A stretch of DNA of 64,000 nucleotides from positions 1 through 64,000 of the forward strand of contig CDRNVI010000071.1 of NCBI GenBank assembly GCA_977017575.1, read 5' to 3'. The notes beneath the pieces were generated by a model that saw only the letters and a list, made by a program, of their open reading frames with translations, was not told the DNA's origin and made no database searches. Shown piece by piece: positions 3,713-21,410 of this stretch; position 1 is the stretch's first letter, and each line of letters begins with the position of its first letter. Source of the DNA: Paramoeba atlantica. Taxonomy: Eukaryota; Protista; Discosea. Made by a program: the position numbers and the translations under genes.

Positions 3713-4082
3713 TTCTTCTTCTTCTTCTTCTTCTTCTTCTTCTTCTTCTTGAAGCACATGGTGCTCAGACGGCGAGTTCAAACCCGCTCATCGCAATATT
3801 CCTGGCGGCCTCACTCTAAGAGGCTGGGCTGATAACCGACTAGGCCCAGTACTCGGAGGACCGTCCCGGACCCTCCCGTCAGGGAACCAGCTCCCTTACC
3901 CGGCTTACGCCTCTTGGGTAAGCCGTGTTGACGTACAGTTCGTCGACGAAGCGTGTTGGCAACATCACGTTGGTGCCGCCTTGGGCAAGCGGAAACTGGT
4001 AGAGGACGTCGGCCTCGGAACTTCCAAATCTGTCTGTGAAGGGTCTGGCTTGCCAGTGACCATCCGGAGAAATCCGGAATGA
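3191..4082 (+). mobile_element. SINE-A interrupted by SINE-B
   Basis: The SINE-A head runs to TTGAAGCACA (3261-3270) and resumes at 3749 with the same 10-mer, which is the TSD. Confidence 0.85.
3271..3750 (+). mobile_element. SINE-B, full length (tRNA-Val(TAC)-like head, (TTC)n tail)
   Basis: The head has a CTTACAA anticodon loop and a GGTTCGATTCC B-box. There is a long (TTC)n tail and a 10-bp TSD TTGAAGCACA. Confidence 0.88.
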
Positions 4083-4609
4083 TTATAATATATATATATT
4101 ATAATAATATATATATTGAGGGAGATACGGAGTATCTAACTCGCTTACTAAGGTTAATTCCAAAACTTGAAAATGCCCCTCAAAGAAGCGAGAGATCCAG
4201 TTTTTTCAAAATTTTAAAACGTAGCAGTAGCTCACTAGATGAACTCTTTAATACTCGAAAAATCATCTACAACGACCTCATTTCCCAAATTGTAGAACAC
4301 TTTTGGTAAAAAAAAGTGCGTCTGCAAAGGTCTGCGATACGACAAACTGGTTGACTAAGGAGAGTCCTTTGAGTACTCCAGTTGGTAAAGAGGTTCCATT
4401 TTGACGCTGGATGTCCGCGGTTCGGTTCCCAGCATCGACATTTTAGAACAAAAAAATTTATATGCTCAAAATCGCGAAAAAAACAAATTCGGAACGATTT
4501 TTTTTTTCAGATTTTTTTTTCTTGAAAAAAGTGGCCAGCTGGCCACCAAAAACACGGTTTGCATTTTGTATATATATAGAGAGAAAAATAATGTGCAGGT
4601 CCGAGTGGT

Positions 4610-5300
4610 ACAGTGTAGCTACAGTGGACCTTGAGAGAGTGAGAGCAGTGCCATGTGAGGCAGTGATTGCACAGTGATGCAGTGCAGCTGCAGTGGCACG
4701 TGCCAGAGTAAGTGCACTGCCATGTGAGGCAGTGACTGCAGTGATGCAGTGTAGCTGCAGTAGCACGTGAGAGAGTGAGAGTACTGCCACGTGAGGCAGT
4801 GACTGCATCGGCACTGTACCTACAGTGGCACGTGATAGAGTGAGAGCAGTGCCCCGTGAGGCAGTGATGCAGTGTAGCTGCAGTGGCACGTGCCAGAGTA
4901 AGAGTAGTGCCACGTGAGGCAGTGACTGCAGTGTAGCTGCAGTAGCACGTGAGAGAGTGAGAGTACTGCCACGTAAGGTAGTGACTGCATCGGCACTGTA
5001 CCTACAGTGGCACGTAAGAGAGTGAGAGCAGTGCCCCGTGAGGCAGTGATGCAGTGTAGCTGCAGTGGCACGTGCGAGAGTAAGAGTAGTGCCACGTGAG
5101 GCAGTGACTGCAGTGTAGCTGCAGTAGCACGTGAGAGAGTGAGAGGCAATGCCACGTGAGGCAGTGACTACAGTGATGCAGTGCAGCTGCAGTAGCACGT
5201 GAGAGAGTGAGAGTACTGCCACGTAAGGTAGTGACTGCATCGGCACTGTACTTACAGTGGCACGTAAGAGAGTCAGAGCACTGCCACGTGGGGCAGTGAC
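4610..5300. repeat. ~55-65-bp minisatellite with ~180-bp higher-order repeat
   Basis: Recurring GCAGTGTAGCTGCAGT(A/G)GCACGTG..AGAGTGAGAG..TGCCACGTGAGGCAGTGA units. Every third or so unit carries the variant CATCGGCACTGTAC. Confidence 0.95.
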
Positions 5301-5339
5301 TCACGTTGAGTGAGTCCACTGAGTGAGTCCCACGGGGGT

Positions 5340-5562
5340 GGGAGAGTGTTGTGGAAGAGTGGCCAGCTGGCCATGTTGTGGGAGTGACCATGTTTTGGAA
5401 GTGGCCATGTTGTGGAAGTGACCATGTTTTGGAAGTGGCCAATTTGTGGAAGGGTGGCCAGCTGGCCATGTTGTGGAAGGGTGGCCAGCTGGCCATGTTG
5501 TGGAAGGGTGGCCAGCTGGCCACCAAAAACACGGTTTGTGCTTCGTCGAAAAGTGGCCAGCT
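5340..5562. repeat. Tandem repeats built on the palindrome TGGCCAGCTGGCCA
   Basis: 27-bp units (GTGGCCAGCTGGCCATGTTGTGGAAGG). The block GTGGCCAGCTGGCCACCAAAAACACGGTTTG also occurs at ~4531, bracketing the minisatellite. Confidence 0.9.
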
Positions 5563-5579
5563 GGCCTTTCTGTTCCTGG

Positions 5580-6852
5580 GAAACCCGTGATGTGCCTAGT
5601 CAACCTATGCCCGCAGAGGCGACTAGTGAATGGTACGCTAATGATTGAAGATGAAATCATTGTAAAGAACGAGAAGACCAAAGAAGAATTAAGCTCATAC
5701 ATTAAAGAAAATGGAAGGCCTGGTAAAATTTTGGATTGCACAGCCTTCTCAATAGCTGGCATCTCGTCCTCAACAGTAGACGGAAATCTTTCGGCTGAAT
5801 TTCGAAAAAGTGATATTGATGATGAGCTTGAAATTGGGTGCGGCTTCTCTTACACCATTCACAAAGTACAGGGAGCTACTCTTACAGAAAATGTCTGCAT
5901 AGACTTGAACCGCAGACCAACATGCTATCACAGCAAGATGTTATGTCATGCCTCGGTGTACGTGGCCCTCTCAAGAGTAAAAAGTGTGAGTCAACTTTGG
6001 TTACTCCCTGAAAGAAGTGATGGAGGCTTTAGCTACTTGGAAAACTTGCGACCCAACGCCGACGTTTCGAAATTCGTGAAACGTATGACGCAGAAGGAAG
6101 GCAATGAAAAATACGTACCTGAAAAAACTCTGTACCGTTGCCCTCCGCCATCTAAGAAAAAGAAACTGCAAAGAAAGGGGGAATACCCTATGTCGCGCGA
6201 AAGTGAAACTTACACGCGACCCCAGTTAAAAGATCGGACGCAAGACAATCAGTGGACACAACCTGGACAATTTATACCGGACACAGTTATAAACACTTTA
6301 GGTTCAGTACTTTCAAGCCCGTCTGAAAGATATCAAGTATTGGATAGTTCTGTGGCAACTACGATTTTTAAGAGATATGCCACATCAGTAGGGGATTTAC
6401 CGGCAGAAATAAGAACAAGAATTTTCTTGGCTGACCGCACTGCCGTTCCATTCTTTTTCAATCAACACTTCGCTCTATGTGTTATCGTACCGCATGAAAA
6501 TAAAGAAGGCGGAAAGTTACTTTGGTTCGATTCCCTGCCTAACCACAATCCGAGGAGAAGAACTGAAGTGCTCTTAGATGTGCAAACTGTTGCGCAAAAT
6601 ATCTTTCACGGAGCACATGGCTGGGAGATTATACAGGGCTCAACCTTGGTGCAAGATGATGGCACCAATGACTGTGCTTTATTCGTTTGCCGTTGGATGA
6701 TTCAGTGCGCAACTCCAGGTCTCGAAACACCTCCTGAACTGTCTCGTACGGAACTTGCTCAGATCGTCAGCCGGGAATCGGTAGAAGCGGTATGGGCAAA
6801 AGAGCGAAGAACAAGAAATACAGTGGAACAAGAAATGTACAGTGGAAAATAG
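5580..6852 (+). CDS. PIF1-family helicase C-terminus fused to a Ulp1/C48-like cysteine protease (5'-truncated Helitron ORF)
   Basis: Helicase motifs PVMCLVNL...LVNGT, YTIHKVQGATL and HASVYVALSRV. Protease-like motifs QHFAL, WFDSL and QDDGTNDCALF (His/Asp/Cys). The ORF-track start at 5446 lies in repeats and is probably spurious. Confidence 0.85.
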
Positions 6853-7202
6853 AAAAGAAATTAGAGTAAATTGATACGAAAATCACATTCATTTTGAATA
6901 CCTTCTTCGTGAGAAGAGGGTCCTCAGACAATTATCTCTCGCCTTGACGTGGCGTCTGAGCTTAATGCCTGTTGGCTAACCAAGCAGAGATACATAAAGA
7001 ACTGTCAACGAACGAAATGTTCCGTATGCACGGCCTGGTGTAAGTGTTGGGGGAACCTCGGTTCCGTCTCACTGAGCCAGTGGACGTGCCTATAGGTGCA
7101 CTTTTGCATTATTAAAGTACAACATAAAGGGCTCAATGCTTAACATAAACAAGACGTAAGTAGAATCGAACATAGACCTCCCAGAGGCAAAATGTTAGCC
7201 GG

Positions 7203-7420
7203 GCGGGCCCCTCAAAAAAAAGATTTCAGAAGCTTGCTTTCTTCAAGATTACCTGCCACGAGGTAAAGCACTCCCCGCGCCAGCGGGTCTGCACCGCCTC
7301 GAAGGGCCCTCCCGGCGGGCCCTTCAAAAAAAAGATTTCAGAAGCTTGTTTCCTTCAAGATTACTTGTCACGAGGTAAAGCACCACCCGCGCCAGCGGGT
7401 CTGCGCCTCGAACGGCCCGC
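7203..7420. repeat. ~113-bp tandem duplication
   Basis: Two diverged copies of GCGGGCCCC(T)TCAAAAAAAAGATTTCAGAAGCTTG...GCGCCAGCGGGTCTGC. Confidence 0.9.
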
Positions 7421-7424
7421 CGTA

Positions 7425-7631
7425 TAACCCAGATTGAAAGGGGCGAGGGAGATACGAAGCAACAGGCGTGGCAGATTCCCACTGAAAAGAAATGGTATCT
7501 CCCGCACGAAGTTTGCCTCCGAGCTAGAAAGCACAAAGGCTTTTCTCGTGCGGGGAGATACCATTTCTTTTCAGTGGGAATCTGCCACGCCTGTTGCTTC
7601 GTATCTCCCTCGCCCCTTTCAATCTGGGTTA
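7425..7631. repeat. Long palindrome (~85-bp arms, one 1-nt bulge, 36-nt loop) forming the 3' end of H1
   Basis: TAACCCAGATTGAAAGGGGCGAGGGAGATAC...CCCGCACGA and its reverse complement were read directly. Confidence 0.95.
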
Positions 7632-7651
7632 ATATAATAGAACTCTTGACT

Positions 7652-8420
7652 CCGCGCACCACCACAGACCCGCTGTCTTCGCAGCCGACCGACTTCATGA
7701 CAGACAGAGCGCCAGAGCATGGGTCCGCCGATACACCGAAAAGGAGCTGATAGCTGAGTATCGCCGCCGCGCTCCCGTCGCCGCTAAATGGTTTAGTGAG
7801 GAGACAGATGCTGAGTTAGCTGAGGATTTTGCGCGAGCTCTGCACAATATACATGGAAAAGAACTCTCTCGGTTTACTTCGATCTTCGTCAGCTAACTCA
7901 CGTGCATGGTGGAATGTGCATGGGGAAATATTGTGTCGGTATGTGTAACGGCCTCTTACAAGGCCGTTATACACACCGACACAATATGATTCTGAAGGTC
8001 CTACTAGACACGCTTCGAAGTTGTGGCCACATACGAGAAATGTATTTTGATCTACCTGGCAACCCCTCCGAGGAGCACCCACCATCATGGCTAGCAAACT
8101 TTAGCACGCTACGACCAGATGGGTGGATTCTCATAGAACATGGCTCAGAAAACATCATTGAACTCACCTCCCCGTGGGAAGAAAATTTTGATAAAGCCCG
8201 CGAACGAAAGTGCGCAAAGTACGAGGAAATTTTGCGCTACCGACAGGCAACAAACGTACGCACGAGCCTCATAACATTTGAGGTCGGAGCTCGGGGCAAA
8301 CTTAGCGATAGTACGCTCGGTCTTTCCTGGGTATTCCCGAAAGATCATAAATACCACGTTCGCTTTTGTCATCGTAGAGGTGATGAAGAATACCAGTGAC
8401 GCCGAATGAGGATCGAATAC
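7652..8420 (+). pseudogene. 3' fragment of an RLE-type LINE (R2/NeSL/HERO-like restriction-like endonuclease)
   Basis: GRYTHRHNMILKVL...LRPDGW...IELTSPWEEN..KARERKCAKY...FEVGARG. ACTCTTGACT occurs on both sides and may be a TSD. Confidence 0.8.
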
Positions 8421-8464
8421 ACTCTTGACTTAGCGTACTGAAGGCCTGGGGCAAGAATCCATAC

Positions 8465-9655
8465 TTATTGGCTCGAAGAACTGGTATAGAAGATTTTGTT
8501 TGATGCCTCCAAAACGCTATCCGTTATTGAATATATCATTTGAATCCAATTGCGCCATGCAGTAGTGCTGTGCTTTTTTATGTTTGCAATTATGTACTGA
8601 TCACAAGGTTGGAACACATGAGTCATTTTCGCCGGGATATCTACGACACTGCAATTGTGATCTTGAAGAAGTTTTCGTACATCTCCATGTTGTTTGGCTT
8701 GGTCAATAATCAAAAGAGCTGTGGCGTGGATTTCCCCAATCTCCATTCGGATCTCCTTAAGATTACCTTGAAACCATTGAACCCATTTCTCAAAGGTCGT
8801 TGCGTCTTGAAAATGAGAAGAAGTCCGATGATCTTGCAAAATACGGTTGTCAAGCTCAGGAACTTTGGCGTGGACTGCATTGGTTGCACCTTTCCAGATA
8901 AATTGAGCACCATGAATTTTTCCATCACCAGAAACCAGGACGCTGCACGTGAACCCAAGACGTGAGGACCCTATTTGAATAGGCTTTCCTTTTTTTGCAC
9001 GTATCCATGTCCATCGATGGTTCTTCTCATCTAGATGACAAAAAAATTCATCCATATTGAACAGCTCGGGTTTCACAGTGCAGTGCTTTTGAAGATCATC
9101 TAAGAAGTTTTTTCCAGCATTTTTTTCCTCGGATGCTGTCACGCGTCGGTGCGACGTTGCAGCTCGAAAATTGAAACCATTAGAACGCAGAAACGAACTA
9201 GCCCACGAATCACTTACAATGAAAGGGCCACCATTCTCAGGCAAAACACTGGGGCGCATTTTGTCAATAAGACCGCGTGCAATGGAGGACACAAACGGAG
9301 CGTCTATAGCCTTGCTTTGGCCATTATAGCAAGTAATAGCTGTCAAAAGCTCCTCCTTCTCAGAGTCTGTAAGTAGAAACGGTCTTCCACGCTGTACGGT
9401 GGGATCTCGGTCCCGAAGAGAAAACACGGTGGTCATGGTCATTCGTTTCTCATGGGTTGAATTCCAGATGCGCACAGCATCTGATACTGTAGAATATTTG
9501 CAAAGAGAGTGAAACTTTTCCAATTCTTCCTTGCTCCACACCTTGCGACGCTTTAGATTGCCTTCTTTTCTTTCGCCATAGTCGTCCAACGCACGTTTGG
9601 GGGCACCGCTTACTGTGGTAGTCTCCAAGGACAACTGGTCGTATTCTCGAGACAT
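8465..9655 (-). mobile_element. pogo/Tigger-like DDE transposase ORF (near full length)
   Basis: N-terminal HTH/CENP-B-like region (GRP..L, SDSWASSF), followed by LFNMDE, LLIIDQAKQH and IPAKMTHVFQPCDQYII. TIRs were not identified. Confidence 0.85.
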
Positions 9656-9682: not shown

Positions 9683-11039
9683 TTGAGGGAGATACTACTC
9701 CCTCGCTACCGTAGGTTAATTCGTCGTGCCCGATTTGTGGACCGATTTGTGGCCCGATTTCGTGCCCGATATCGTGCCCGATATCGTTTCAGGTGATTTT
9801 TCGAAAAAATTATTTACAAAGACGTATGAATCGAATTTAGTGACAAGATTACTAGTTTTTCAACAATTCCGATGGGTACCCCCTGCCCCCCCTCCCACCA
9901 TGGTGATCATATCAATTTTTGAAATTTTGCAAAACAAAACTAAAAATTTGTGGGTGAAAGTGAAAAAATATATTTTTCCCAAATCAACTCTTAGACCGTT
10001 TTTTGAGAGTTTGGGGCCTGATATACGTGTATACGCTTTGGTTTCATTCGATATTTCTCCACCCTGTTCTGGTAATATACCTACAAAGTCCAAAATTTAC
10101 CTGGAAGTGTGTGACACGCAAGTCTGTAGAGGAAGGAGGAGGCGCAAGGCAAAACGGAAGAAGGCGGAGCCTTCTGTCTCTTTGCCGCGGCGACGACGAC
10201 TTCCTCGCGTGGGAAGCTGTAAGGGATCTTAGGGAGCATGTTCCGATAGCTATGTAATCCAGGGTAAAGTGGACGAGGGAGATACTAAAGGCACCTTTGG
10301 AAAACCACCTCGAAACTGGAACGGTATCCCCCGGTTTGTAGGGCATTCTGATGGTGGAGCATTATGATGATGTAGAGATTTCGTGCCCGATATCGTGCCC
10401 GATATCGTTTCAGGTGAGCTTTCGAAAAAAACGTTTATAAAGACGTATGAATCGAATTCAGTGACAATATTACTAGTTTTTCAAGAATTCAGATGGTTAC
10501 CCCCTGCCCCAACCACGTCCCCACCAGGGTGATCATAGCAATTTTTGAAATTTTCCAAAATAAAAAACTAAAAATTTGTGGGTGAAAGCGATTTTGTTTT
10601 TCCCAAATCAACTCCTAGACCGTTTTTTGAGAGTTTGGGGCCTGATATACCTGTATACGCTTTGGTTTCATTCGATATTTCTCCACCCTGTTCTGGTAAT
10701 ATACCTACAAAGTCCAAAATTTACCTGGAAGTGTGTGACACGCAAGTCTGTAGAGGAAGGAGGAGGCGCAAGGCAAAACGGAAGAAGGCGGAGCCTTCTG
10801 TCTCTTTGCCGCGGCGACGACGACTTCCTCGCGTGGGAAGCTGTAAGGGGTCTTAGGGAGCATGTTCCGATAGCTATGTAATCTAGGGTAAAGTGGACGA
10901 GGAAGATACTAAAGGCACCTTTGGAAAACCACCTCGAAACTGGAACGGTATCCCCCGGTTTGTAGACAATTCTGATGGTGTAAAAGTCAAAAAACATATT
11001 TTTCCCAAATCAACTCCTAGATCGTTTTTTGAGAGTTTA
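9683..11039 (+). mobile_element. Family P non-autonomous element, partial tandem dimer (H1-related ends)
   Basis: Begins A|TTGAGGGAG-ATACTA-CTCCCTC, followed by CCCGAT(T/A)TCGTG subterminal repeats. A second, 5'-truncated copy starts at ~10375. Only a homolog of the left arm of the H1 palindrome is present (~10255-10335 and ~10880-10960). Confidence 0.7.
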
Positions 11040-14299: not shown

Positions 14300-17172
14300 T
14301 TACAGACCCTTTAACTGATATTCAAATATCAGTGTCTTTGTAGTTGTTGTTGTTGTTGTTGTTGTGCGTATTTGGCTAGAGGTTACCGATTTAAGTTTGC
14401 GCTGCATTTTGCTGCCATTAGAATCACCATTGGTATGGTTTTTGCGCTTGTCTTCTGCATGAGGAATCTCGCCGTAGAATCTCAAAGCCTTTTCTCCCTT
14501 GCTTATTTTACTAGCCACCCAGTCTGCCATATAATTATGTGGATTCTCGTTATGCGCTTTAACTTTTACGCAGTAGAAGCGCTTTGTCCATCTTAGCGAA
14601 ATATATGTTTCTTGCAATTTCTGAAGTATAGCGCCTCCCTCAAATGATTTAAATCCTATGAATCTGAACCTATGGATAGCTCCATGAAAGAAATCCCAAA
14701 CATACTCAGAATCCGTGTGCAAAATGACATCTCCGTCGTAGGACAATGCGATGAGAAGAGCCTCGTGCGCGGCAAAGGATTCTATTTCCTGAATAGATTG
14801 AGAGAATTCATGAGGAGGTTTTAACCCAAGAGATATAGAGGGCCCGCGGCGGGGCAGACTACCCCACAACCTGTGTGAGTTTCATCCTTTTTAACGATTC
14901 GTGCTCCATCTGTATAAATGTGTGTTTCATTTGGCCCCATTGGAAATGGTTGCCGCCCTTCTTCAATGTATTGTAGGGTTTCGTAGCACCCCTTGTTTAC
15001 CCCCTTTACCAAAAGATTTTCCCATAGTTTTGAAGTTGTTTTAGTGTACGAGTGCCTGGGTTCAAGCTGATTTTGAAGATTTTCAAGTTTCTTGCACCAT
15101 TAAGACCGATTTTGACCAAGTTTTAGAATCTCAGATACGTCAGAATGTAACTCTTTTGCACATCTTTCTGATAGCGATGGCTTGGAACTCTCATCATTCG
15201 TTCTCCATAGTACGGCAGTTACGAATGGAGTAGGGTGACGAATAAGGTGGCCTACTAGCGAGGCACGTTGCAATTGTATCACAGTATTGGGCTTTAGGTC
15301 AGTGGGGTAAAGAGAGTCTACTCTGCAATGCGCCTCTTTCGAGCACTTGACTCCCAACATGACCCTCCTCATTCTGTTCATTTGGACTTCCACTTCATGT
15401 AGCTCTATCTTATTTAAATTCCAAGTCCCTGGATTATAATAGACCACTGATTGAACGAGAGACTTAAAGATGTGTAATTTGCTTTTTGGTGATATAGTAG
15501 AACTCCATATGGCTTTGAGTTTGTGCATTATTGCCCAACCTAATCGTACACTTTCTTGTGAGTTTGAGCTGCGATCCTCCTCGTTCTGAGTGCTACCCAA
15601 GTAGCGATAATATGTAACTTTTGGTATTTTTTTTTGTTTGACTTTTGGTATATCGCCGAGTGTCACTACTTGCAAAGGTCTTCCATCATCCTTAACTTTA
15701 CCTAGTGTCATCCGTGCCGTTTTGTTTGGTCCGACATTTATTTTCAAATTAGCTTTTTCTGCGGAAGTTTTAAGTTTGTGCAACATTGTGCTTAGCTCCT
15801 CCTTGGATTCGGAGAAGAAAACTATATCATCAGCATAATTTATATCAGATACACGCAGTTCCTTTAGGCCTCTGCTCCTAGTTTCTGAGCTATGTGTCAC
15901 AAGCCCTAAGCGATTTATGTCGATAGATTCAACTAAAATACGATCAAGAACCATAATAAGCAGGTATGGGGCCAGAACGTCACCTTGAAGAGTCCCCTGT
16001 AAAAGTGGAAATGAGTCTGTATTACCGTATGGTGTTTTCACGTGCGATTTGAGATTTTGATAAATACACATGACCGTAGAACTGAGATTTTCGGGAATAT
16101 CGAAAGCACGTAATGTCTCTTTTATCGCAGCGAATGATAATGAAGGAAAGGCTTGTTGAAAGTCGACAAAACAGACGAACACCCCAGCCCCTCGGCGTGA
16201 TTTTTCCATTATTTCTAAAAACGTTGCCTGAGCGCCAGCTGTTGAGCGGTTTGGTCGAAAGCCGAATTGATTCCCGCGAAGCAAACTTTCCACTGCTGGT
16301 TGTATTCTGTCTAAAATGATTTGATTCAAAATCTTCACTACATGATTCACAAGACAGATTGGTCTCCAATTTGTGAGTGAGCGCAAGTTACCTTTCTTTG
16401 GCAATGGGACCTGCAATATCGATTCCCAAGATTCATCCGCTTTTCCGGTTTTTCGTACTTCATTCATTATATCCAGGAGAGCATTATGCAAGTCTTGATC
16501 AGCTGAAATAGCACGTAGAGCTTCAACAGGGATATGATCATCGCCTGTAGCTTTTCCTGACTTAATCTTTACCATCGCAGCAGTTAGTTCCTCCACTCCA
16601 AATTCACCATCATCAATTTTTGCCAGTCGTTTTGGTGCAGCAGGTAAACTTATTGCTTCATGACCTTTGTAAGCACTACCCCCTACCATGCTGAAATGAT
16701 TCTTCACTATATTAAGGCTGCTGTTTACCGTAGTTGAAACTAGCGGAAAATCTTGCTTCTTGTCCCCTACAATTTTTCGAATTGTGCTGTACGCGGATTT
16801 TGGAGTTGATTTAAGCTCTTTTTCCATGGCGTCGCACTCATTTATAATAGAGGAGTCTAGCTTTTCAGAGAATTCTTTCCATGCAGTAGCAAACATAGTT
16901 TTATTGCCCACGATCTTCAGCAGAGACTTCATGTCAAATCCGGATAGATCTGTTTCAGCATCAATGCGAATTTCTTTTGCATTACTAGTTTTCTTGGGCA
17001 GACTAGATGCGGTCACTCTAACAGCAGAAGAGAGTTTTGTCCAAGATATTTCGCTGGCCTTATCTATTTCCATTTTTGGCGCGTTTTCGGACTTCTGATC
17101 CTCCGACCGAATTCTTTTTGGCACAATGTTTCTGCAACAGCTAACACATCTATCAAAGGTACCTTTGATCAA
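14300..17172 (-). mobile_element. RTE-group LINE, 5'-truncated: RT plus RNase H
   Basis: VPLPKKGNL..NWRPICL, QFGFRPNRST, GTLQGDVLAPYL, DINYADD, YRYLGS, then HIYTDG, LHTDSEYV and KVKAHNENPHN. Stops and frameshifts occur after the RT. Confidence 0.92.
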
Positions 17173-20100
17173 AATTTGTTCGATGTCTGGTATGATGATA
17201 AAAGCCCTGTGAAAATCATTTGCGGAGATTTAAATGCACCTCTTCTTACAGTACGAGGCTGGAAATGCCGCACTAAGCGGACTAAGGCGCTACGCAGTTT
17301 GTTGCATTCAATGGGCGCCCAGTCTGCACATGAAGGATGCTGTGCGCGGCGCAAGTGGACATATCGCTTTCCAAAGTCCAAAAAATATCCAGAAGGTTTG
17401 ACGAAACAACTAGATCATATAATCGTAAATCGTCGATTTTTCTCGTCGATACGTAAACAAAAGGTTTGCATCCCCCCTATTCCAACCAGACACTGCGTAC
17501 TATCTTCAAACTTTAATTTTCGTTGGAAAGAACAAGAAAAGAAACTACAGCCGCCCTTCTGGTCGGCTGTTGTTTGGTCCCTTCGGCTGTAGTTTGGACC
17601 GTTCTGGTCGGCTTAATGATGACATTAAGAGCAATTTTGCAACCGGAGTTAAGAAAGCCCTGAAACATGCTCCGAAAAGAATACGTTCAACAAACGAAAC
17701 TGAAACTGCAACTACTCCTCATCTTGAAGTCGAAAACATCAAAGTAAGTTGGGAAAAACTAGCCGAAGCAATCCATTCCACCTCAAATACTCTTCCAAAA
17801 AGGCTTCCAAAAAATGCGGACAATGCGGCTATTCGGGAAATTGACCCAGATGTGTTGAACTTAGAATGTTATGAAAGAAGTTGCCAGCAAAAGTGAATTT
17901 AAACATGCGACTAAGATATTTTCTGATCGAATTGAGACATCTATTTTAACTGAGTGTGAAATTTTGGAAAAGGAACTAAAATCGGCGCCTAAATCAGCGT
18001 ATAGAACCATACGAAATATTGTTGGGGATAATAGAAGTGAATTTGCAATATTTGGGAGAACTGCCAAAGAAAGTCTCGAAGCAGTTAGAAATCATTTTTC
18101 GAAAGTCGGACACGAGACAGTGGCTGAAAAAGGCACCATTCGATTTCCAACGGCACCGAAACGATTAGAACAGATTGACGACGGAAAATTTCGCCAATCT
18201 TGGAAGTCCATATTACAGGTACCGCTGCCAAAAAAGGGAAACTTGCAATCACTGGGAAATTGGAGACCAGTATGCCTTGTTAACCATGTGGTTAAAGTGT
18301 TGAACAGAATGATCCTAAACCGCATCCAACCGGCAGTAGAGAAGTCTCTCCGTGGGAACCAATTTGGTTTCCGCCCGAATCGATCTACAGCAGGCGCGCA
18401 GGCAACATTTATGGAGATTGCAAGCAAATCGCACAAAGGAACAGGCGCGTACGCATGTTTCGTAGACTTCAAGCAAGTCTTTCCATCAATATCGTTCGAC
18501 TCCATAAAAGAGGCTCTCCGAGCTTTTGATATACCTCCAAAGCTGAGTGCAGCTGTGATGTCAATTTACAAAAATCTTCGATCTCATGTACGGACCCCTT
18601 ACGGAACAACGGAAGATTTTCCTATTGTAAGCGGCACTCTTCAAGGAGATGTTCTAGCTCCTTACTTATTTGCTATGGTTCTGGACCGAATTTTGGTAGA
18701 GGCTATTGACATGAACAAGCTCGGGCTGGTAACGCACACATCCGGGACAAAAAGTCGAGGACTCAAAGAACTGAGAATTTCTGACATTGATTACGCTGAT
18801 GATATTGTATTGTTTGCTTCAACGAAACCTGAATTAAAAATCATGCTTACCAATTTATGTGCTTCAGCAGAAAAGGCAAACCTTAAAATCAATGTTGGTG
18901 CACAGAAAACGGCTTGGATGACACTTGGAAAGGTAAAGGATGATAATACCGCCCTAGAAATAGACGGATTAGGGGAAATTCCTAGAGTAAAAAAGTACAG
19001 ATATCTTGGCAGCACACAGAACACCGAGGATACCTGTACGTCCCCCAAGGAAAGACTGCGACTAGGATGGGGTGTAATGCACAAGCTTCGCGCCATATGG
19101 AAGTCCTCTATCTCCTCTCATTGCAAATTTCAAATTTTCAAAACACTCGTTCAATCCGTCGTGTACTACAACCCTGGCACATGGAATGTCAATCAGGCAG
19201 AACTTCACGATATTCAAGTTCAAGTAAATAGAATGCGCAGAATTGTATTTGGCGTAAAAAATGCTTGTGACTCTCGTCTCAGAACGGAATCGCTTTATCC
19301 TACTGACTTAAAACCTGAAACAGTAATTAAGACACAGAGAGATTCCTTAATAGGGCATCTTGTGCGCCATCCTACACCGTTTACTACAGCAGTACTATGG
19401 AGAATAAATGATGAGGCCTCTAAACCAACATTGTCCGAACGGTGTGCCCACGAACTACACTCTGATGTTACTGAAATCCTACAACTTGGACAAGATCGCC
19501 CCACATGGCGGAAGAAACTGGAAAAACTACAGGTGGAGCTGGAACCACAACCTTCTTACACAAAGTCTTGTTCTCCTGCTTGGGAAAAAAGTATTAAAAA
19601 GATATTGGAAAACAAGGACTATCAAACTCTACAGTACGTGGAAGAAAGTAGCAGGTGCATCGGTATCGGCTCATTGGGTTCCACTCATTCAAAGGGTGCG
19701 AAGCAATGCGATCCCTTCAAAACGCTTACTACAGTACAAAACATACTAAAAAATTCTACTGTATCAAGGTCAAACCACACAATGAAAATATGTACAACGA
19801 TACCGCAGATTATTGCGGTGGTTGTAAAACTACCGCTCTACACTCGATTATTGAAAAAAAAGTGAACACAAACAGTGAAAATATAAAGAGGAACACAGTA
19901 ATATAATAGAAGAAAAAAATATAAAAGGGGGCTCCGGTGGTCCAAAACTGAAAAAAAATTTTGAAAAAAATGGGGGGCCCATGGGGGGGGTCCAGGGGGG
20001 AGGTCCAGGGGGGGGGCATGAGCGGAGGGGGCGGAGTAATCCGTGGCGTACGCTACGTAGAATTTGCCGTTTGTACAGGGAAACTCTTTGCATCCAGACC

Positions 20101-21410
20101 TCGTCGACAAGGGAAACTCTTAACATTGTTAAAGATTTCTTTGGGGGGGGCATGGTCGAGCAAATTTTTTCGAAAAAATTAGTTTTCGAAAAAAAACCGC
20201 AGAAAGGGTAGCCGGGGTCTTGGCGCGCATTTTCCACCCCCCTACCCGGGGGTGACCCCCCCGCGTATCCGCAGGACGGGTCCGCCAATTTCGGATTTTT
20301 CGGAAAAAATTTTTTGAAAAAAAATTCAACTTGGCGAAAAAAATGACAAAAAAAATATTTTTCCAAAATGGTTTCCCCTATTGTATTTTGATAGTTTGGG
20401 ACCTACACTAGCTTTCTCCGCAGTTGTTTTCGCAAGGTATCCCTTCTTCAAACTGTGGTGCGCCCCTCAAAATGACCCACTTTTGACTAAAAATGGTGAA
20501 AAAGTATTTTTCGGACCTAAAGGGGCATTTTTGTGTCGAAAGAATGGTATGGTTGGAGTCGTATTCTCTACCCAATACGTTCGGTAGGCTTTCATTCATG
20601 CCTGCGAGTGATTTCCCACGCGCAAATGTCGGATTTAGTGCTCTGAGAGCAAAAATATGCGAAAATGACCCCATTTTTACCCGAAATTCGGCTATTTTTG
20701 GCTATAATCTTTCCGTTTTCCAGGCTAAATTTTCTTTTTTAGGCTCTTCGTTAAACGCGGCGGTAGTTTTCAACGCGAAGCGCGCAGCATGAGTGACTTC
20801 TAAGTTGAAAACAACCACCGCGTTTAACGAAGAGCCTAAAAAAGAAAATTTAGCCAAAAAGGCGTGCAAGCTGGAAGGAAATGAACTAGCTATAAAATAC
20901 TACGGGGATATATTGCACGGCAATGCAAAGAGGAAATCAGAGCAAAATAATACCTCAATATGTCTTAAAACTCAGAGAACTAGAAAAGGCACAAACCAAA
21001 GAACAGTGCCTGTATCTACGGGGCCCCCTTTGTCGGAAAACTCACACGATTCACGTTCAACGAAACAACCCAAACGGAGCATTCGAATAAATGAAAAGAG
21101 GACGAAATCTCCCATACGCAAAGCTTCTTTACATAAGAAGACAAAGGGTATCAACTTAATTTCCAGCCCCCCACAGATAACCAATTCGAACGTAAGCATT
21201 TAGGTGAAACGAAATAAACCGCAAATGAAGCGTCTAAAAGATACAAGTTTGGACTTATCATCATCCCAGACAAAGAGTGAACCAGAAAACGAAAAGGAGT
21301 CACAAAAGCGAGTGAAAAGGACATCAAAGAAAAAACCTTGTTTTACAGCTAAAGGGAAAGACAAGAGTATAATTGATGTAAAAAAGCATGGAAATAAGCG
21401 GGAGAATTAG
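17173..21410 (+). mobile_element. RTE-group LINE: partial APE, RT, partly deleted RNase H; interrupted by element M
   Basis: APE motifs ICGDLNA and QLDHIIV; RT motifs GTLQGDVLAPYLF and DIDYADD. The RNase H reading NDTADY|LAKKACK resumes after the M insertion. Confidence 0.92.
19813..20848 (+). mobile_element. Family M non-autonomous element (full length, with a 122-bp captured insert)
   Basis: Begins A|TTGCGGTGGTT-GTAA-AACTACCGC (hairpin) and ends with a 119-bp palindrome (20730-20848), GAAAA|T. Removing it restores the LINE codons GAT TAT TTA GCC. Confidence 0.85.

Follow-up and report, generated by a model that had tools for sequence, protein, structure and literature searches.

The stretch analysed here, hereafter the window, comprises 64,000 nucleotides (nt) of Paramoeba atlantica DNA (assembly GCA_977017575.1, contig CDRNVI010000071.1, positions 1-64,000 of the forward strand) and carries at 4116-7630 an element that we interpret, with a probability of roughly 85%, as a non-autonomous derivative, formed by internal deletion, of a young rolling-circle transposon of the Helitron2 type (HLE2). 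Its features, all on the forward strand, are described here from left to right. Upstream of the element, a copy of a short interspersed element (SINE) ends at 4084 and is followed by a 32-nt AT-rich stretch, which leads to the TT at 4116-4117 that forms the 5′ boundary T-run. A hairpin follows at 4118-4142, consisting of the subterminal inverted repeat GAGGGAGATAC (4118-4128), the loop GGA and the inner partner GTATCTAACTC (4132-4142), with 9 of 11 bases paired and a computed fold of -4.2 kcal/mol (z-score -2.45). The 5′ leader (4143-4589) contains a tRNA-like stretch and the first copy of a 31-bp direct repeat, and is succeeded by two satellite arrays identified with Tandem Repeats Finder (TRF), array A at 4590-5301 with units of ~65, 123 and 182 bp, and array B at 5368-5538 (TRF, 5368-5522) with 17-, 27- and 34-bp units that include the palindrome TGGCCAGCTGGCCA, the second copy of the direct repeat lying at 5508-5538. 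A deletion breakpoint at 5566/5567 joins these arrays to a RepHel gene remnant (5567-6852), which retains the last 428 codons and the stop codon, followed by a 3′ untranslated region (6853-7197), a 112-bp tandem repeat (7198-7424, TRF) present in two copies, and a long fold-back that forms the 3′ terminus.

Comparison loci, numbered here with an L, are contigs encoding protein matches to the open reading frame (ORF) of the window, and all belong to one ENA assembly of the same organism; the only sequence outside the window from another source consists of Logan contigs. A protein search with the window ORF returned matches from that assembly only, and a search with the palindrome ORF matched only three called proteins. 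Besides the window's own locus (L001, 99.95% identity), a complete 12.5-kb copy with the same first and last bases was found in L008 (2928-15446), and full-length but broken copies were found in L004 and L009. L003 carries the same element from TATTGAGGG to CTGGGTT at 96-98% identity, between unrelated flanks and with a Tc1-type insertion, L007 is a shorter derivative with no ORF and with both ends the same, and L011, which has the same 3′ end, represents a third deletion type. L010 holds SINE copies only.

The 5′ homology starts at the identical base, the TT at 4116-4117, in five copies (window, L003, L004, L007 and L008), the upstream flanks being different, and TA precedes the TT in 5/5 copies that have a 5′ junction, which read TA-TT-GAGGG. 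At the other end, homology stops at CTGGGTT in all five copies whose 3′ junction is clean (window, L003, L007, L008 and L011), again with differing flanks beyond, and six 3′ junctions consist of CTGGGTT and a following A or T, without target duplication. The flanks of L003, L004, L007, L008 and L011 are unrelated to those of the window while the ends are shared, target duplication is absent around every copy, and both boundaries lie inside T-runs. Internally, the first 62 nt are 100% identical between the window and L003, L007 and L008, and the leader region (first ~455 nt) is 97.6-98.2% identical to the same three copies. The array A repeats are present also in L003, L004 and L007, and satellite matches not distinguished between arrays A and B occur in L005, L008 and L009. 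The 3′ untranslated region is colinear with L003, L004, L008, L009 and L011, and the 112-bp repeat has several more copies in L003 and ~18 in L008.

Alignment with the complete copy defined the deletion. Window 5347-5566 corresponds to L008 5553-5758 and window 5567-7421 to L008 11589-13445, so that the window copy lacks the 5.8 kb at L008 5759-11588, comprising the 5′ untranslated region, DUF6570, Rep and most of the helicase. L003 is contiguous over the 5566/5567 breakpoint, that is, it carries the same deletion at a different locus, and because the breakpoint is common to at least two loci with unrelated flanks, the window-type derivative itself has moved, mobilised in trans after the deletion. 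Several distinct deletion derivatives retain both ends. The copies are 97.6-99.6% identical, which indicates that the family is young, and this identity is too close for a copy phylogeny to resolve the number of inversions discussed below. In Logan contigs from four runs of the same organism, the depth (summed over contigs, which is not a copy number) was ~2-5 times that of the flank over the ORF part and a few-fold higher still over both ends, palindrome included; contig joints from 4150 to 5919, from 4588 to 7322 and from 5380 to 7284 fit several deletion derivatives. One run of a second organism gave only SINE, satellite-like and 112-bp-repeat matches.

These observations bear out an earlier note made from the window alone, which had proposed a single Helitron-like element: its start and end positions are correct to within 2 nt, the sequence agrees with the 5′ hairpin that it described (TT, motif, GGA, partner), and the 5′ motif is accompanied by the helicase ORF and the palindrome at other loci too. 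The full Rep(HUH)-helicase ORF that it suggested seeking between the same ends is present in L008.

Some further observations were made on the leader and on insertions into the copies. The degenerate tRNA-like stretch at ~4340-4440 has D-loop-like and T-arm-like motifs and is kept in other copies; neither ARAGORN nor Rfam identified a tRNA or other RNA in the leader, and only sub-threshold miRNA-like matches on hairpins were returned. The perfect 31-bp direct repeat (4531-4561 and 5508-5538) encloses the two satellite arrays, and these may therefore have arisen by insertion or expansion between duplicates of a single leader segment. In L003, a Tc1/mariner-type element (7217-8776) with a 373-codon DDE_3 transposase sits in the 5′ leader. 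In L009, a 379-bp insertion (15591-15969) that includes a ~185-bp copy of the SINE of window 3900-4084 lies in the left arm of the fold-back, flanked by an apparent 13-bp duplication of element bases 7431-7443.

The fold-back terminus and its counterparts in two further families

The 3′ terminus comprises two arms of 79 nt each, at 7425-7503 and 7553-7631, which are 100% complementary, spaced by 49 nt and 207 bases long overall; the stem extends to ~87 bp when a 1-nt bulge is allowed, in agreement with the ~85-bp arms that had been noticed in the window. As single-stranded DNA, the structure was computed at -118 kcal/mol (z-score -26.8). The left arm contains a direct copy of the 5′ repeat (7445-7455) and the inner partner GTATCTCCC (7495-7503); the centre (7504-7552) is partly paired and has in the window the orientation termed flip; and the right arm contains the inner sequence GGGAGATAC (7553-7561), the 3′ repeat GTATCTCCCTC (7601-7611) and a 19-nt tail that ends with CTGGGTT at 7630. 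Base 7631 is the first base of the flank and pairs with 7425 by chance. The 3′ repeat is the exact complement of the 5′ motif and lies 19 nt before the last element base, which fits the distance of about 20 nt given for the right arm in the earlier note. The right terminal sequence, repeat and tail alike, is mirrored just upstream, and the fold-back extends to the last base. Each arm also holds an inner inverted repeat, which in the right arm consists of GGGAGATAC, 39 nt and GTATCTCCC, and the right arm alone forms a hairpin holding the 3′ repeat (-13.3 kcal/mol, z-score -3.0). With one mismatch or none allowed, the 12-mer GAGGGAGATACG has eight occurrences in the window, compared with 0.18 expected. 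The short duplex GAGGGAGATAC/GTATCTCCCTC that the fold-back would display is, as judged from base pairing, the same as that in the 5′ hairpin. The right-end fold-back is far larger than the short hairpins described for the Helitron2 group, and a literature search for long palindromic or fold-back Helitron2 ends gave no match, which is not proof of absence.

The palindrome is the terminus of the element and not an independent fold-back miniature inverted-repeat transposable element (MITE): it has no duplication of its own, its left flank is constant element sequence, and its right flank is the flank of the element in every full copy. Two outcomes had been named beforehand as speaking against the reading of the earlier note, a failure of the 5′ motif, helicase ORF and palindrome to co-occur at other loci and a target duplication around the palindrome itself; neither was observed. 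L006 carries the palindrome without the upstream 112-bp repeats or other element parts and was considered as an independent MITE; this was rejected, one arm being truncated and the sequence reading in the other orientation as an ordinary 5′-truncated copy. Apparent solo palindromes in the read data, with loose ends at 7426 and joints from 5490/5519 to 7424, were first taken as a functional left boundary; this was also rejected, because the identical arms let contigs of right arm plus flank map reversed on the left arm, and because the unit of the satellite is a palindrome in its own right and the sides giving support measure no more than 28 nt.

The same plan recurs in two non-coding families outside the element. 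The P family, found in the window at 9683-10997 on the forward strand, is related to the element: it shares the 5′ terminal ~45 nt at 77% identity and retains the 5′ hairpin in a different pairing register. Complete P copies in L009 have a fold-back of their own, with ~78-nt arms, a 38-nt centre and the terminal CTGGGTT. When the arms of the element (H) and P were aligned, 48 positions were identical, 22 differed yet were symmetric within each family, and 9 were asymmetric, the conserved blocks being the terminal heptamer, the repeat with the 5 bases preceding it, and the inner partner. The M family, at 19815-20847 on the forward strand, is alike in geometry only, with no sequence relationship; a hairpin marks its 5′ end, and at its 3′ end the inverted repeat is enclosed by a fold-back whose arms are ~40 nt long. 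An empty site for M was identified in the other copy of the host retrotransposon (L002 2290-2310), which reads CAGATTATT followed directly by TAGCC where the window has the 1033-bp M, with no duplication and with T-run boundaries. The proposal that P and M are tied in architecture to a helicase-bearing element thus holds for P, in its 5′ 45 nt, its CTGGGTT and its fold-back design, and extends to M in geometry only. Because P and M have it too, the fold-back looks like a selected trait of the Helitron2 lineage of this genome. It would be either older than the family splits, with concertedly evolving arms, or made repeatedly, and both would point to a function.

Further observations concern the P and M copies themselves. 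The P sequence of the window is a partial tandem with a ~620-bp unit, in which every unit is missing the first 73 nt and retains no more of the fold-back than its left-arm half; it looks like an aberrant rolling-circle or recombination product. M is an insertion polymorphism between two retrotransposon copies of 97% identity, its 5′ junctions read A-TT-GCGG in 11/11 independent (non-nested) cases seen, and head-to-tail M-M junctions occur, for example at window 56824.

Elsewhere in the window, ORF 7902-8399 contains a 27-nt inverted repeat (7928-7987) with 93% complementarity and a loop of 6 nt, located 300 bp downstream of the element. Between the element and the P array, a 396-codon ORF occupies 8465-9655 on the reverse strand, the L001 counterpart of which has a DDE_1 (pogo-like) transposase domain. 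A long tandem array, known from the ORF list and BLAST matches only, spans 25000-50300, with a 3420-bp period in its later part (~35-50 kb) and three overlapping ORFs per unit.

Transposase gene and probable placement within Helitron2

The complete copy in L008 encodes the transposase P0101 in a single intact 2124-codon ORF. It has a DUF6570 domain (residues 237-371, E 7e-16), a Helitron_like_N domain (residues 496-723, E 1.7e-18) with the HUH motif HMHIV and the two-tyrosine motif YLFKY, a PIF1 helicase (residues 1428-1589, E 1.3e-15) with Walker A GGPGCGKS and Walker B VLIDEAS, and a weakly C48-like C-terminal domain of ~220 residues; no Exo_endo_phos or other endonuclease match was found in P0101. 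The window remnant is ~99% identical to the P0101 C-terminus. Only 5567-6852 of the window ORF (5446-6852) is a genuine coding part, the first ~40 codons being read-through of satellite array B, and it contains the C-terminal part of the helicase (2B domain and last helicase motifs) and the C48-like domain (~6230-6852). On the window ORF alone, Pfam gave a weak PIF1 assignment (2B domain, E 0.007); the helicase identity is secure because full-length copies carry it. The PIF1/C48 ORF that had been read from the window therefore exists and belongs to a helicase, but it is a remnant, and its C48 part is weak.

For the C48-like domain, putatively of the cysteine-peptidase type (Ulp1/SENP, clan CE), Pfam C48 (E 0.063) and an ElaD/SseL-like profile (E 0.0095) both fell below the curated cut-offs, and the best PDB profile match, SENP1, reached only E 0.11. 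The candidate catalytic order of His (HFALC), Asp (WFDSL) and Cys (NDCALFVC) is kept and is conserved in the related family of L002 at 45% identity. The assignment is that of weak profile matches and motifs, and an AlphaFold model built from a 6-row alignment was too poor to use (predicted local distance difference test score, pLDDT, 44.6). Among 1.8 billion representative proteins, relatives of the C-terminal domain were found only in this sample. The nearest helicase relatives carry DUF6570 or UCH: P0012 and P0024 carry DUF6570, and in P0006, a related HLE2 protein, a UCH domain follows the helicase. The L002 family (L002 3190-10984) is a second Helitron2-type family with ~70% nucleotide identity and the order DUF6570 (E 1e-19), Rep, PIF1 and C48-like; its ORF is in pieces, and the contig ends short of the element's 3′ end. 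It could be the partner of P or M.

Canonical Helitrons (HLE1) have a 16-20-nt hairpin ~11 nt from the end and insert between A and T. The HLE1 features of 5′ TC, 3′ CTRR and an A/T target appear to be absent here, since the element starts with (T)TGAGGG, ends with CTGGGTT and has inverted repeats. Nor is the family a Helentron in the strict sense, as the apurinic/apyrimidinic (AP) endonuclease after the helicase is missing in P0101, which has the C48-like C-terminus instead. In accounts of the Helitron2/Helentron (HLE2) group, the inverted repeats are described as short and asymmetric or subterminal, and each end as bearing a hairpin (PMC4067079, PMC5148889, PMC13085455), together with insertion at T/T or T/C without duplication, boundary T-runs, often central tandem repeats, and an endonuclease only in Helentrons (PMC4067079, PMC5148889, PMC7492417, PMC11417382, PMC13085455), and DUF6570 has been reported as specific to the HLE2 clade (PMC11417382). 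Of the HLE2 features tested, all were found in the present family except a small stem-loop after the right repeat, the T/T insertion site being predicted from the junctions; the subterminal inverted repeats are 11 nt long and asymmetric, their distance from the terminus being 2 nt on the 5′ side and 19 nt on the 3′ side. The DUF6570 marker, together with inverted repeats that are asymmetric, a hairpin at either end and boundaries in T-runs, thus points to Helitron2/HLE2, and the family probably sits inside this group, so that the separate Helitron-like group suggested in the earlier note was not upheld.

The closest described systems are FoHeli1 and FoHeli2 of Fusarium oxysporum, in which the 3′ repeat is itself inside a hairpin and insertion occurs at TNAT/T (PMC5148889). 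With these and the HELIANO HLE2 group, the family shares a RepHel protein with an N-terminal DUF6570 and without endonuclease (PMC5148889, PMC11417382), terminal inverted repeats of 11-12 nt that are asymmetric, and a 5′ hairpin formed by the repeat and a nearby partner; with FoHeli1 and FoHeli2 it further shares a hairpin that holds the 3′ repeat a few tens of nt short of the end and, as predicted from the junctions, insertion beside an AT/T without duplication, TNAT/T being close to the TA-T/T here. It differs from them in having arms of 79-87 bp where they have a short stem, in a hairpin that includes the last nucleotide, so that the terminal tail is also duplicated in inverted form, and in the lack of a separate small stem-loop after the repeat. 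It also has a C48-like domain joined in frame to the C-terminus of the helicase, whereas HLE2 relatives have UCH there or OTU in separate ORFs. The HINE/DINE-1 elements (PMC4067079, PMC7492417) likewise have a 5′ subterminal inverted repeat with a nearby complementary repeat, a 3′ subterminal inverted repeat and boundary T-runs, as well as central tandem-repeat or satellite arrays that fill up to half the element (PMC7492417) and deletion derivatives >95% identical to the autonomous partner (PMC4067079, PMC7492417). In contrast, the AP endonuclease by which Helentrons are defined is missing from the partners here, and the right flank consists of a fold-back of ~200 bp and not of a ~60-bp segment with a 5-10-bp palindrome.

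Several points weigh against reading the window copy as a derivative of an HLE2 transposon that uses its fold-back. The placement was made from the DUF6570 domain marker and the end structure, and the comparison loci come from a single assembly searched by way of the window ORF. The last 38 nt, where a separate small stem-loop would follow the right repeat, are unfolded (-0.8 kcal/mol, z-score 0.17), and the fold-back could be tolerated rather than used in transposition. When 200 bp of each flank were joined for four copies of the element family and the available DNA was searched, no match spanning the junction was found, so that we infer the exact nick positions and the T/T target from the filled sites, several registers within TA-TT being possible.

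Origin and possible role of the fold-back

From what is known of Helitrons and HUH enzymes, the top strand would be nicked by Rep at the T-run beside the 5′ hairpin and peeled 5′ to 3′ by the helicase; the right end of the displaced strand would fold into the 79-87-bp hairpin, Rep would cut 19 nt past the 3′ repeat, after CTGGGT(T), and the strand would be inserted at a T/T site. The fold-back would then represent an enlarged termination or recognition hairpin. The IS200/IS605 and IS91-type elements serve as a working analogy, in that an HUH nuclease is thought to read hairpins of single-strand ends and to cut at a fixed distance, without target duplication; they differ in being prokaryotic, in having no helicase fusion, in their small imperfect hairpins and in their enzymes.

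The fold-back might instead be a co-opted passenger, which we consider unlikely though the strongest of the alternatives. A short fold-back or a 5′-truncated copy would have inserted tail-to-tail beside the old 3′ end of the ancestor, and the transposase would have adopted the outer end of the passenger as a new terminus, similar to the capture by end bypass that is known from Helitrons. The palindrome in L006 that stands without other element parts would agree with such an origin, as would the outer end of the left arm, which is the exact reverse complement of CTGGGTT and is followed by a bottom-strand T as at true 3′ junctions, and the Logan depth over the palindrome, a few-fold above that of the ORF part; composites formed by self-insertion have been described for Helitron2 elements (PMC5148889). 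However, L006 is more simply a 5′-truncated copy in the opposite orientation, with one arm cut and with the loop variant of L004 and L005, an older 3′ repeat was not found upstream of 7425, and there is no target duplication around the palindrome. P and M, moreover, share the design with sequences of their own, which would take three captures, or one early capture followed by concerted evolution of the arms.

The orientation of the hairpin bears on a second alternative. The centre is in flip orientation in three copies (window, L003 and L007) and in flop orientation in five (L004, L005, L008, L009 and L011). The inversion takes in a 1-nt asymmetry of the arms, such that the left arm of the window equals the reverse-complemented right arm of L008 at 100% and vice versa, and the centres of L007 and L008 are identical but for the inversion. 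Flop is found in every copy that retains Rep, whether full-length (L004, L008 and L009) or a deletion derivative (L011), and flip is confined to derivatives without Rep, either ORF-deleted or ORF-less; the three P copies seen share one orientation. Each round of replication in a rolling-hairpin replicon generates flip and flop, the orientations being mixed in consequence regardless of lineage, and the intermediates are linear duplexes with covalently closed hairpin ends.

The right end might be thought to have evolved into a self-complementary replicating hairpin terminus, a transposon-borne counterpart of parvoviral rolling-hairpin ends, in which the 3′ end snaps back and primes the second strand and Rep nicks the mirrored site; we regard such a working hairpin telomere as improbable, more so than the passenger origin. 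If true, it would account for the perfect arms, the concerted arm change between families and the hairpin inversion between siblings. In its favour, the whole asymmetric part of the hairpin is inverted between copies of 98-99% identity, down to L007 and L008 centres that differ in nothing else, the arms of young copies are perfect, H and P are both symmetric despite 22 differing arm positions, a paired 3′ end would give a primer-template junction, and the transposase is an HUH nuclease. The terminal hairpins of parvoviruses such as adeno-associated virus (AAV) also comprise a long terminal palindrome with small inner palindromes, act with an HUH Rep and occur as flip and flop among copies. Yet the orientation tracks the sub-lineage, flip being limited to Rep-less derivatives that could share one ancestor, and all three P copies agree; older copies (L005 and P) gain arm mismatches like ordinary DNA, and the hairpin at the 5′ end is merely small. 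Recombination or template switching between 79-nt inverted repeats inverts the spacer without hairpin replication, and since the orientation follows the sub-lineage, a single such event is enough to explain the inversion. The element differs from parvoviruses and AAV also in having the long palindrome at one end only and in being an integrated transposon without capsid genes that is known from sequence alone. For the resemblance to rolling-hairpin ends that had been noticed in the window, the inversion of the hairpin between copies is the single observation in support, and it is confounded with lineage. Least probable by far is a chance juxtaposition of SINE tail, satellites, helicase pseudogene and MITE, or a segmental duplication, with no single mobile unit: the visible modularity (two satellite arrays, a 112-bp tandem repeat and an ORF fragment) would suit it, but the module order and the first and last bases recur at at least five loci with unrelated flanks, the gene being intact at one, and shared start and end bases with differing flanks and no duplication rule it out.

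To our knowledge, there is almost no experimental knowledge of how Helitron2/Helentron transposases recognise and cut the ends of their elements. For the HLE2 element with an enlarged right-end hairpin favoured here, the 79-bp-arm hairpin shows the 3′ repeat as the duplex of the 5′ hairpin, which suggests that one hairpin motif is read at both ends. Finders of HLE2 elements may place the ends of such elements wrongly when they expect terminal inverted repeats of 11-18 nt and then a short stem-loop. The orientation of the hairpin among sibling copies provides a strand marker that sets hairpin processing against plain recombination, and the family, which combines an intact transposase of 2124 codons with several deletion derivatives and is accompanied by two non-coding families (P and M) of the same plan but different sequence, constitutes a natural test system for end recognition in this group.

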